Shown here: piece after piece, positions 408 to 57,446 of the stretch | Layout of the letters: every line of letters begins with the position of its first letter | Position numbering within the stretch: position 1 is the first letter of the stretch | Assembly: GCF_001194135.2 (NCBI RefSeq) | Contig: NC_068995.1 | Coordinates: 37,253,357 to 37,317,356, forward strand | Reading direction: 5' to 3' | Length of the DNA: 64,000 bases | DNA from: Octopus bimaculoides | Taxonomy: Eukaryota | Notes under the pieces: generated by a model | What the model was told of the DNA's origin: nothing | The model's input: the letters and a program-made list of their open reading frames with translations, nothing else | Database searches by the model: none | Made by a program: the position numbers and the translations under genes

Positions 408-587
408 GTAGTCTTCATCAATGGCGGTAACGTTGAGGATAATATCGTTTGTTTTCAAACTGGGATACTCATTGATTTGTCCTCGGTAGAGCTTTTTGCT
501 GAACGACGGTGTGTGTAAGTTCTGATCAGTCACCTGAATGTTGAGCTTAGCAGTGTCCTTTCGCTGAAGATTGTCTGTCTGGTAGGC
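408..587 (-). CDS. Cadherin exon 9 of 9 seen (180 nt, phase 0/0)
   Basis: Acceptor ttattag, donor gtatga. Encodes AYQTDNLQRKDTAKLNIQVTDQNLHTPSFSKKLYRGQINEYPSLKTNDIILNVTAIDEDY: an EC linker followed by the AxDxD motif. Confidence 0.93.
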
Positions 588-1299
588 CTAATAACCAATA
601 AAAAATGGAAAATGTATTATAAAAGAAACTTTTTGATGTTTGTTTTTGCGTACAAAAGAAAACAAAATAGAAAAATATAATTATGAACGCAACTTGTGTA
701 TATAGATAGATAAATGTTTTATCTAACTTTCTATAATTAGTTACTAAAAAGTGTGTGAGTTTGAGTGTGTGTGTGTGTGTGTGTGTGTGTGTGTGTATGT
801 AAACAACATCACACAAAGACAACCCACGGCAACTAACAGAGACCAAATATAATTATAAAAAGCAACAGAAGTGTCCACGAACAAGAACATTTTCTTGTTA
901 CAACTTAAAGAACATATGAAGGCAATAATCTTAGACTATCGTTTGCTTTATATTTTTTAATGGTAGATCACATAGCAACGTCTATAGAAACGGTTTCGTA
1001 GCCATGAAAATTTGATAGGGGGAGCATGAATACGCACCAACCGTGTAGGTTTTGTGTGAAGGAGATCCAGAGTGTCAAAGAACGCTCACTCAAGACAGAT
1101 GCAGATATTGCTATTATAATGTGCTGATGTAAGTCGATAACATTATGAAGCGGGAGAAACAAGTATAGCTAAATTCAGAGGAACCAGCACCATCGACGAA
1201 TACATGAATGTGGGAGAAATAAAGATAACACGAGCAATGAAATAAGCAATTTATTATATAGGATCCGATGGTGGGATAGGATAATAAGGTAGGCCTGAA

Positions 1300-1700
1300 A
1301 GAAAACTGCTGCTCTTGCAGGCCATTCAGACAACCCTGAGACTAGGTATGGTCCTCTGGTCAGAAGACGTGAAGCGTATCCTAATAGAAATTACAGTCCT
1401 GAAAAAGGAATGGTTTGATCAAGAGTGTGAATTGAAGAATCGCTTATCACGCATTCTGCCTGCAAAATGGCACGCAGAAAGGGAGACAAGCACGGCTATT
1501 GCAAGCCGAGATCGGCTGCTGAGGATTTTCTGCTTAGTCGATGTGGAGTGTGTTCAAAAGCCATCCGAATGATTGACAAAAAGCGACAGATTGTTACTTA
1601 CCAATTGGATAAACAACAGAAACAAATTCTTCTTAGTTCATGGAGAAAAAAGAGAAGAGAAGGAGCAGTTGGGCAGTCCTGTGACTATTACTGCTGACTA
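1300..1700 (+). mobile_element. Degenerate LINE (RTE-like) fragment
   Basis: A GC-richer island translating to KKEWFDQEC..., reminiscent of the WFD motif between LINE endonuclease and RT. Frames are broken. Confidence 0.3.
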
Positions 1701-54800: not shown

Positions 54801-57309
54801 CGCTAGATATTTTTCTTTGAGAACTATTCGGTGATCTTCTTCTAGCACATCAGCAGTCCACTTAGTGGTCTCTTTTATATATACATGTACAATAATCCTT
54901 TTGAGATCGCAGATAATTTTTTTCTGAATCTCCTGATTCTTTTAATGTGCTAGTTTCCTACCAAATTCAGTCGTTTACAGCGATCCCGGTGTTCATTTAG
55001 TACATATTTTATCAACCCCGAAAGGTTGAAAGGCAAAGTCGACCCCCGGCGACATTCGAACTGAAGACGTAAAAACGGACGAAATACCGTTAAGCGTTTT
55101 GTCCGGCTTGTTCACGATTCCTCCTATTCGTCGTCTAACACTGAGATAATATTCAAAATGTAAGGAGGCGGGTTGCTAGGAATGTTAGATCGTTAGGTTA
55201 AAAAAAAATACCTTGTGATCCTGTCGGGACCAGCTGTGCTTTTCATTATCCCGAGGTCAATTAAGTAAAGTTCCACTCACGTAAGGTAGTATACAATCGA
55301 CAATACCCATACCGAGGTCTAAGATGTGCCTATTTAAGAAGTAAACATTAGTAATTCGATCCATATAAGGTGTTCGTACAGGATCACCCAATCTGCTAGA
55401 AATATCAGCTAAATATTTGTCTCAAATCAGATATAATTTCGTTTAGGTCAATGAAGTAGTCAGAGATGTAAATACATTATAATACATAATCTGCTACTTA
55501 ATAATAGTACGTGATCTGTTTCATCAAAGCAAATGCGGAGCAAAAACAACACCAACAAAAACAACACCGTGAGATGTTTGAAAAATTAGAGCGATATTTA
55601 TTCTAATTTCCGTACTGAGTTCAAATCTCACCGAGGTCAAGTTTCCCTTCTGCTTTTCATACTGATAAAAGACAGTACCAGTCAAAAGCAGTACAATGGC
55701 GGAATTGTTAGAACGTTAGAAAGAGAGTTTTTTAGTATGTGACTTGTGTCTTTGACTTCTGAGTTTTTCGGGTAGTAAACTTAATCTGTTACACCGTTTA
55801 ACACTACCAGATGGTCCACGGTACTGAGTTCACCGTTGTAAGAATCGGGTTCCGAATACGATTTTGAGAGTAAGACTAACCTCCTCCTTTTCACACAAAT
55901 TTACGAGACACTGCAAAAATAAAGGACTATCGCCTATGACCTGTGCTCACAGGCGAAGATATCAAAGACAATATATTTGTAACCGATGTTACTATCTGCA
56001 TTATGGATCCGCTTCACAATCATTCTTTTATTCTTTTACATGTTTCAGTCACTTGACTGCAGACATGCTGGAGCACCGTCTTAAAGGGTTTTAGTAAAAA
56101 AAAAAAAAAATAGACCCCAGGACTTATTCTCTGTAAANNNNNNNNNNTAGATCCCAAGACTTATTCTCTGTAAACCTGGTGCTTATACTATCGTCCACTT
56201 TTGCCAGACCGGGAACGTAAACGCTCCAGCATCGGTTGTCAAGTGATGGTGGGACATACACGCACACACACACACACACACACACACACACACACACACA
56301 CACACGACAGTCTTCTTTCAGTTTCCTGAACCCGGAACCATGTGGTTGCAAAGCAGGCTTCTTACCACACAGCCACGCCATGTGTTATTGGTTTTCATCA
56401 CAAGGCTGTACTGTTTGGAAATGCATCTTACACCACAGTATTCAGTTGACATATAAGTTCTGTGTCGAATTTGATAGACGGGTACTCATTGACCATACTG
56501 TACCTCAAATATAACAGATTTCTGAACCGCTATGGTTCATTTATTATACTTTGCGATTGCTATACTGTCTCCATCTACTTTTGTTATTAGCTCTTGTTAG
56601 GTTTGGCAGTAAAATTGGTTACTTTGCTAATAATGGATATTTCAGATTATATTGTCTGGTGATTAGTCTTAATCCCGAATCTGTTTAGTGTTAAGCAGAT
56701 GAAATACATCATTACGTTCGGATTCGGATATAATGCCAGTACAAAGTGCATGATGGTATTGAGTTGAATTGTCTGCAGCAGCGTAAAGAGACATTCAACA
56801 ATTCAACAGTTGTCTTATTGTTTGCAGTTATCAACCTTGTGTATTTTATGTTAGTTCCTCTGGCTGTCTAGCAATAAGCATCTTGACCATATCATCATCA
56901 TCATCATCGTCGTCGTCATCGTCATCGTCGTCTTCCCCTTCCTCGTCGTTGTCCTTGTCCTCCTCCTCTTCCTATCGCTGGGTTGATCATTCACAGCTGA
57001 GTGGACTAGGGCAATGTGACATAAAGTGTTTTGCTGAAGGGCACAACGCATCACCCGATCCAGGAATCCAAGCTGTAATGTTGCGATCGTGAGTGCAAAA
57101 CCCCGAACCAGCGTTCCACGCGTCTTCACTTCTCAGTGAAGATCTGTTGACCTTTTCCCTGTAGATATGATGCCAATTGCACCTGTATTGAATTTTGTGG
57201 GTGAAGAGCGAAACTACAGGTCTTAGTCCATAAAGTCAGATTGTTTTCATTCATAGCCACCCCAAACTTTGTGATTCTGCGTTTACATTAGATATGGGAT
57301 TTAACTTAC

Positions 57310-57446
57310 CGTTCGTGTTTTTAATTCTCCATTGACGACAAGACTTTGAGTTGAACTATCATATCGCAAATACTCGGTGTCACCCTCGTTCATAAACACT
57401 TTATGTTTACCATCTTTTGGTACATTGAACTGTCGAATTACGGAAC
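57310..57446 (-). CDS. Cadherin exon 1 of 9 seen (137 nt, phase 1/0); not the first exon of the gene
   Basis: Acceptor ttttctctctccag, donor gtaagt. Encodes (G)SVIRQFNVPKDGKHKVFMNEGDTEYLRYDSSTQSLVVNGELKTRT, a divergent EC1-like segment in phase with downstream exons. Confidence 0.8.

Follow-up and report, generated by a model that had tools for sequence, protein, structure and literature searches.

The stretch of Octopus bimaculoides DNA considered here, a window of 64,000 nucleotides (nt) on contig NC_068995.1, contains nine small minus-strand exons that encode part of a long cadherin. These exons are already known, since RefSeq annotates both the gene and exactly these exons under protein XP_014779065.1, which carries the automatic name 'protocadherin Fat 4'. 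Our overall reading, to which we assign a probability of about 85%, is that they are internal coding exons of this annotated gene, and that the gene belongs to a family of long cadherins found in lophotrochozoans and is neither an orthologue of PCDH15/Cad99C nor a true Fat.

Nine coding exons of an annotated cadherin gene

The gene was identified by searching 1.84 billion representative proteins and then looking up the cluster. The counterpart obtained, XP_014779065.1, is an O. bimaculoides protein of 2810 amino acids (aa), and the spliced product of the nine exons equals its residues 53-404 without a gap, with 352 of 352 residues identical (100%). Because identity is complete over 352 residues, the match lies far beyond chance and does not depend on which exons were chosen when the gene was first noticed. 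The database protein and the spliced product have the same sequence and the same exon structure, that is, they represent the gene itself, and only the automatic name is doubtful. Over the same residues, the Octopus sinensis orthologue (XP_036365784.1) is 92.3% identical and shows no insertion or deletion. A pseudogene or an artefact can be ruled out given the intact reading frame and the 92% identical protein in O. sinensis.

When the full XP_014779065.1 sequence was compared with the window by tblastn, the nine exons were returned and nothing else. Residues 1-52 and 405-2810 are thus encoded outside the window, and the gene extends past the window start, beyond the last of the nine exons; on the chromosome-scale assembly GCA_001194135.2 its range is 481,748 bp (~482 kb). 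An upstream exon was sought in 57447-64000, and none was found there. In terms of extracellular cadherin (EC) repeats, the window covers EC2 and EC3 in full, together with most of EC1 and the beginning of EC4.

Exons were enumerated as in-frame open segments of the minus strand with a pyrimidine tract and AG acceptor on one side and a GT donor on the other, in a window that is AT-rich (~35% G+C), rich in microsatellites and interrupted by 16 runs of N. The stretch adjoining the gap at 39896-40023 was read directly. All nine exons have an AG acceptor with a pyrimidine-rich tract upstream, and gtaagt serves as the donor in five of them (Table 1). Once joined, they comprise 1058 nt, which correspond to 2 nt of a split codon followed by 352 codons free of stops. 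The resulting 352 residues match the Pfam Cadherin model PF00028 with E=4.3e-15. On the minus strand, GSPPNWKTYFRM was located at 8899-8934 and DQNLHTPSF at 501-527, and the sequence FDLTVR|AYQTDN straddles the junction of the eighth and ninth exons. Two other searches gave nothing useful: regular expressions for cadherin motifs, run over open stretches of the minus strand, produced only simple-repeat noise, and a protein search with the peptide of exons 8 and 9 returned no match.

The initial annotation had described a hidden cadherin gene whose nine exons of 54-180 nt, with canonical splice sites, join in phase into 353 codons with cadherin motifs. Its exons and donors were recovered exactly and its quoted motifs located, and the in-phase, stop-free joining stands, with a count here of 352 codons plus a split codon. 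The gene is hidden only with respect to the track of open reading frames (ORFs), in which exons this small would be invisible in any animal genome. The same annotation had set this fragmented gene apart from the expanded cephalopod protocadherins, which it took to have most of the ectodomain in one large exon. That the cadherin gene, with its many exons and long introns, differs in kind from the expanded protocadherins of octopus is supported. Octopus protocadherins have been described as 168 multi-exonic genes (PMC6339937).

Table 1. Coordinates of exons, assembly gaps and intronic remnants, numbered from the first letter of the window; 'gene span' denotes the span of the nine exons (408-57446)
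Feature	Positions	Strand	Length (nt)	Content	Donor
Exon A (1)	57310..57446	-	137	Begins within the Gly52 codon (its last 2 nt); residues 53-97, first half of EC1	gtaagt
Exon B (2)	48784..48837	-	54	RSVLSLTGICIHVLKSYN; EC1 strand with family-invariant Cys107	gtaagt
Exon C (3)	46220..46318	-	99	End of EC1, EINDPPFF linker, start of EC2	gtaaga
Exon D (4)	39801..39887	-	87	KTKSGELIYQVEGGDLHDVSRSEVRYQLL (EC2); acceptor tttcag, 8 nt from the gap 39896-40023	gtgagt
Exon E (5)	34114..34248	-	135	Middle of EC2	gtaagt
Exon F (6)	32198..32326	-	129	End of EC2, non-canonical DEDDQSPKF linker, start of EC3	gtaagt
Exon G (7)	13545..13635	-	91	Start of EC3, invariant Cys269; last 1 nt belongs to a split codon	gtaaat
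Exon H (8)	8788..8933	-	146	(G)SPPNWKTYFRM...FDLTVR, middle of EC3	gtaagt
Exon I (9)	408..587	-	180	AYQTDN...DQNLHTPSF linker...AIDEDY; end of EC3, start of EC4	gtatga
Assembly gap	26998-27442			Within gene span, intronic
Assembly gap	30077-30086			Within gene span, intronic
Assembly gap	36596-37026			Within gene span, intronic
Assembly gap	38218-38921			Within gene span, intronic
Assembly gap	39896-40023			Within gene span, intronic
Assembly gap	41289-41298			Within gene span, intronic
Assembly gap	41503-41529			Within gene span, intronic
Assembly gap	42588-42848			Within gene span, intronic
Assembly gap	56138-56147			Within gene span, intronic
Assembly gap	61009-61018			Outside the span of the nine exons
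Reverse-transcriptase ORF fragments	27622-28858	-		Intron between exons F and G
ORF with RVT_1 match	28095-28646
ORF remnant	20206-20622	-		Intronic
ORF remnant	14053-14154	-		Intronic
ORF remnant	3434-4066	+		Intronic

None of the nine exons contains an N. The sole close case is the gap at 39896-40023, which cuts the pyrimidine tract of the exon D acceptor. Judged from the alignments, the gaps within the span conceal no coding exon of the gene model, because the 352 residues match the RefSeq product without a gap, because no indel separates the O. sinensis orthologue from these residues, and because tblastn against the window detects no further part of the protein.

The long introns also appear to hold debris of mobile elements. 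The intron between exons F and G contains fragments of a reverse-transcriptase ORF, with adjacent open frames that carry reverse-transcriptase-like motifs, and therefore probably harbors the remnant of a retroelement; one ORF among them matches RVT_1 with E=5e-6, which is under the Pfam cut-off. Three further ORF remnants in introns resemble mobile-element debris. One of these includes ...CATCPQCKVDYIGETG..., another reads APYFPDLAPCDFFLF, a sequence typical of mariner/Tc1 transposase C-termini, and the third is an ORF of 210 aa with ...YPCFLCMWDSRDR... in it. A Pfam scan of two of the remnants (20206-20601 and 3434-4066) gave no hit.

Architecture of the protein and its lophotrochozoan relatives

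Cadherin-superfamily proteins are made up of tandem extracellular repeats joined by acidic, calcium-binding linkers of the DxNDNxPxF type. XP_014779065.1 begins with a hydrophobic, signal-like N-terminus, which we read as a signal peptide, and Pfam recognizes Cadherin in 24 stretches of the full protein (2.6e-292). Linker motifs recur every ~105-125 residues, which corresponds to ~25 repeats. The first ~five repeats form a unique, non-repeated head, and it is the part of this head from EC1 to the start of EC4 that the window encodes. In the body of the protein, residues 602-2800, a unit of three cadherin repeats recurs approximately seven times in tandem, and its copies are 28-37% identical to one another in register. 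Every third linker there reads NKPP or NHPP in place of DxNDN, and the other linkers are mostly canonical. This pattern predicts that calcium-free hinges would be regularly spaced along the body.

The protein ends in ...AEAKLIVRVMKKFCCRVPC (terminal KKFCCRVPC), a short Cys-rich tail. A hydropathy scan for transmembrane (TM) segments found none that is TM-like outside the signal peptide, where the best 19-residue Kyte-Doolittle mean is 1.14. Likewise, Pfam gave no EGF or laminin-G family at E<=0.01 for the proteins of octopus, Lingula or Lottia. A homologous Cys-rich tail (...AEAKLKLTISG..CGCCLVRCG...) also closes the Lingula relative, again with no membrane-spanning segment, and the octopus and Lingula models both stop in this tail shortly past the last repeat. 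If the models are complete, such Cys-rich, TM-less ends suggest a secreted long cadherin.

The closest relatives of the octopus protein are long cadherins of other molluscs and of a brachiopod, namely Haliotis XP_067676185.1, Patella XP_050393417.1, Lottia LOTGIDRAFT_229554 and Lingula XP_023931546.1. These proteins are collinear with the octopus protein from end to end, and XP_014779065.1 forms single end-to-end high-scoring segment pairs with the family at 865-1528 bits (Haliotis, 1528), whereas all other cadherins in the same BLAST hit list reach at most 680 bits. Over the N-terminal 400 residues, identity is ~35% inside the family versus ~25% outside. Certain features are invariant among the members, including a pair of Cys residues in EC1, an NDPP.F linker between EC1 and EC2, a D.DD..P.F linker between EC2 and EC3, an EC3 start of the form IGEKP...C...P..A.D.D, and a second Cys in EC3 (LCQ). 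The four relatives are known as gene models, several of which are truncated or end in junk, and only the Lingula protein also has the Cys-rich tail. For the family as a whole, the most fitting description is that of an unclassified lophotrochozoan long cadherin.

Two additional observations concern the family and its detection. The Lingula sequences P0003 and P0153 show pairs of domain hits with the same score spaced ~1200 residues apart (e.g., 960-1051 and 2182-2273), which suggests either a recent internal duplication or an artefact of the assembly or model. A protein search with the family profile returned only two generic cadherins, and all proteins returned were of 565 aa or less.

PCDH15, Fat and CDH23 as alternative identities

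PCDH15 combines 11 cadherin repeats with a membrane-adjacent domain, one TM segment and a cytoplasmic tail; it forms a heterophilic EC1-2 'handshake' with CDH23 and localizes to stereocilia or microvilli. The initial annotation noted a likeness between the third repeat of the spliced product and PCDH15 EC3, and from this it proposed a PCDH15/Cad99C-like molecule, that is, a tip-link or microvillus cadherin. The likeness itself was borne out. In PDB, an EC3 profile built from five species found its best single-domain match in PCDH15 EC3 (23 bits, positions 278-373), and significant single stretches were obtained only in several chains that contain PCDH15 EC3. A 420-column N-terminal profile aligns through its positions 193-388 to PCDH15 residues 189-389 at 55 bits. 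Furthermore, comparison by hhalign with aligned N-termini of vertebrate PCDH15 yields a single in-register match from EC1 to EC3 with a probability of 96.9-98.6%, in which the conserved EC1 Cys of the octopus family stands opposite the EC1 Cys of PCDH15. The two proteins have in common this Cys position, the DxDD..P.F linker between EC2 and EC3, an EC3 core (…FDL.v.A.Q.dn…) and a non-canonical linker between EC3 and EC4.

The assignment drawn from this likeness did not survive tests of specificity. The octopus protein, at 2810 aa with at least 24 repeats and no TM segment found, has an architecture unlike the 11 repeats, TM segment and cytoplasmic tail of PCDH15. The Pfam model of PCDH15 EC1 (PF18432, 'ECD') recognizes the mouse control at 6.2e-58 but leaves octopus EC1 unmatched at E<=10, and the EC1 profile of the octopus family misses PCDH15 EC1 in PDB. 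In the reverse direction, where mouse PCDH15 EC3 was compared with ~180 long cadherins, octopus EC3 ranks only 299th of 2087 domain hits, and with mouse EC1-3 as the query the collinear hits in the octopus family rank from about 546 to 967. The best partner of that query is an amphioxus cadherin of 3277 aa (87 bits, residues 20-385). Profile comparisons by hhalign agree, in that N-termini of the octopus family reach 58-83 with the PCDH15 N-terminal profile, which is lower than a tick Fat (85), a Dachsous-like protein (111) and the amphioxus protein (180), and the octopus N-terminal profile scores mouse PCDH15 at 111 versus 128-160 for many unrelated cadherin N-termini. Neither side is thus the other's best match. 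The resemblance to PCDH15 is real but weak, and limited to local EC2-EC3 features that other long cadherins share. Because every specificity test fails, orthology with PCDH15/Cad99C is not supported by these comparisons, and we consider it very unlikely.

Several other indications that might seem to bear on this question carry little information. A Foldseek comparison of an AlphaFold model of residues 1-420 (predicted local distance difference test score, pLDDT, 75) with PDB places all cadherin families at ~1e-19 to 1e-20, with scores that are alike for CDH23, CELSR1, clustered protocadherins, PCDH24 and PCDH15, and so does not discriminate among them. An apparently collinear match of residues 570-808 to PCDH15 EC6-7 was given no weight, since this region is where almost all cadherin chains map best. 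A weak precomputed 'Ig_Cad99C_N' hit on the product was also set aside, as that Pfam-type family is listed as well for a clustered protocadherin of fish and a cadherin fragment of shark. In the literature, Cad99C is treated as the fly orthologue of PCDH15 (PMC6031363), and a sequence derived from Octopus vulgaris expressed sequence tags has been labelled Oct-PCDH15 (PMC7465212), which could not be related to the present gene.

The RefSeq name raises a second alternative, namely a genuine member of the Fat family, orthologous to Fat4. Proteins of the Fat/Fat4 type carry ~32-34 cadherin repeats followed by EGF-like, laminin-G, TM and cytoplasmic domains, and reach ~4500-5000 aa. Automatic names do favor this view, as labels of the type 'protocadherin Fat 4(-like)' or else 'Fat 1' were given to the octopus protein and to its relatives among molluscs and brachiopods, and the Pfam family Cadherin_FAT4_N matches XP_014779065.1. 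However, the best stretch for Cadherin_FAT4_N is internal (1354-1447) instead of N-terminal, neither EGF and laminin-G domains (by Pfam) nor TM and cytoplasmic domains were found, and the octopus protein is ~2000 residues shorter than Fat proteins. Its similarity to proteins named Fat is generic, with ~25% identity and at most half the score seen within the family. A Fat4 orthologue therefore has an even slimmer chance than a PCDH15 orthologue, and the automatic name is misleading for the octopus gene and for its relatives, because the EGF, laminin-G and TM parts of Fat are lacking in the gene models.

Of the alternatives named, orthology with CDH23, the other tip-link cadherin, has the smallest probability. 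CDH23, with its 27 repeats, TM segment and PDZ-binding tail, is similar to the octopus protein in repeat number, and a nemertean 'cadherin-23-like' protein (hhalign score 196) counts as one of the closest outgroups by N-terminus. But that name is itself automatic, the octopus protein showed neither a TM segment nor a cytoplasmic tail, and the CDH23 fragments in PDB (EC1-3, EC19-21 and EC22-24) all map to the generic region 600-960 without collinearity. More generally, Fat4 and Fat-like cadherins, Dachsous and CDH23 resemble the octopus protein in their length, their multiple repeats, their many small exons and a generic repeat similarity, whereas PDB fragments of Fat4, Dachsous and CDH23 are not collinear with the octopus protein, in which no EGF, laminin-G or TM part was found. 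Rankings of the whole protein against PDB or the library were rejected as a test of family, since repeat number dominates them and CELSR1 and giant cnidarian cadherins come out on top.

The outgroups offer some hints regarding the origin of the head, although their names ('cadherin-23-like' for the nemertean protein, 'Fat 4-like' for those of amphioxus and Nematostella) are automatic. Outside the family, the octopus N-terminal profile has its best partner (EC2-EC4, hhalign 212) in the amphioxus protein of 3277 aa, XP_078576868.1, which is also the best partner of the PCDH15 N-terminus (hhalign 180, residues 30-385). It differs from the octopus model in its long repeat-free C-terminal tail, and its EC1 does not align with the octopus family. 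The N-terminus of this long cadherin (Branchiostoma XP_078576867-71, 3037-3278 aa) matches PCDH15 EC1-EC3, starting at residue 20, far better than the other long cadherins tested. To judge from these alignments, a PCDH15-type head sits on the 3277-aa amphioxus protein.

A number of points weigh against placing the octopus gene in a separate lophotrochozoan family of the architecture described above. The C-terminus and the missing TM segment rest on computational gene models, and it is possible that a 3' exon with a TM segment has been missed. Only two models, those of octopus and Lingula, have the Cys-rich tail in common, and the models of O. sinensis, Patella, Lottia and Haliotis end differently, some being clearly truncated or running into junk. 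On the N-terminal side, the in-register alignment of EC1-EC3 profiles and the DxDD linker common to the octopus protein and PCDH15 leave room for a distant common origin of the N-terminal module. The amphioxus long cadherin, to which both the octopus family and PCDH15 have their best outside match, provides a transitive link that leaves room for it too.

Possible working and significance

If the lophotrochozoan long cadherin has the architecture predicted by the gene models, general knowledge of cadherins offers a plausible way in which it might work. The protein would be a long extracellular adhesion or link filament, stiffened by calcium and interrupted by periodic flexible hinges. Its N-terminal head, part of which is encoded in the window, would make the adhesive contact. 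The protein might be secreted, or it might be anchored through disulfides of its Cys-rich tail or through a partner. Secretion is the weakest step of this proposal, and it could equally well prove right or wrong, because a 3' exon may have been missed.

A more specific version would combine these elements into a lophotrochozoan-specific, secreted, TM-less cadherin of ~25 repeats with a periodic three-repeat body, calcium-free hinges and a Cys-rich anchoring tail, whose unique head derives from the same ancestral module as the N-terminus of PCDH15. Such a combination is unlikely as a whole. If it were true, the protein could serve as an extracellular link or filament on ciliated or microvillar sensory cells in molluscs, for example in statocysts or suckers. 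Should the TM-less, Cys-tailed architecture with its three-repeat periodicity be real, the octopus protein would represent an uncharacterised kind of long secreted cadherin, with relevance to the sensory epithelia of cephalopods.

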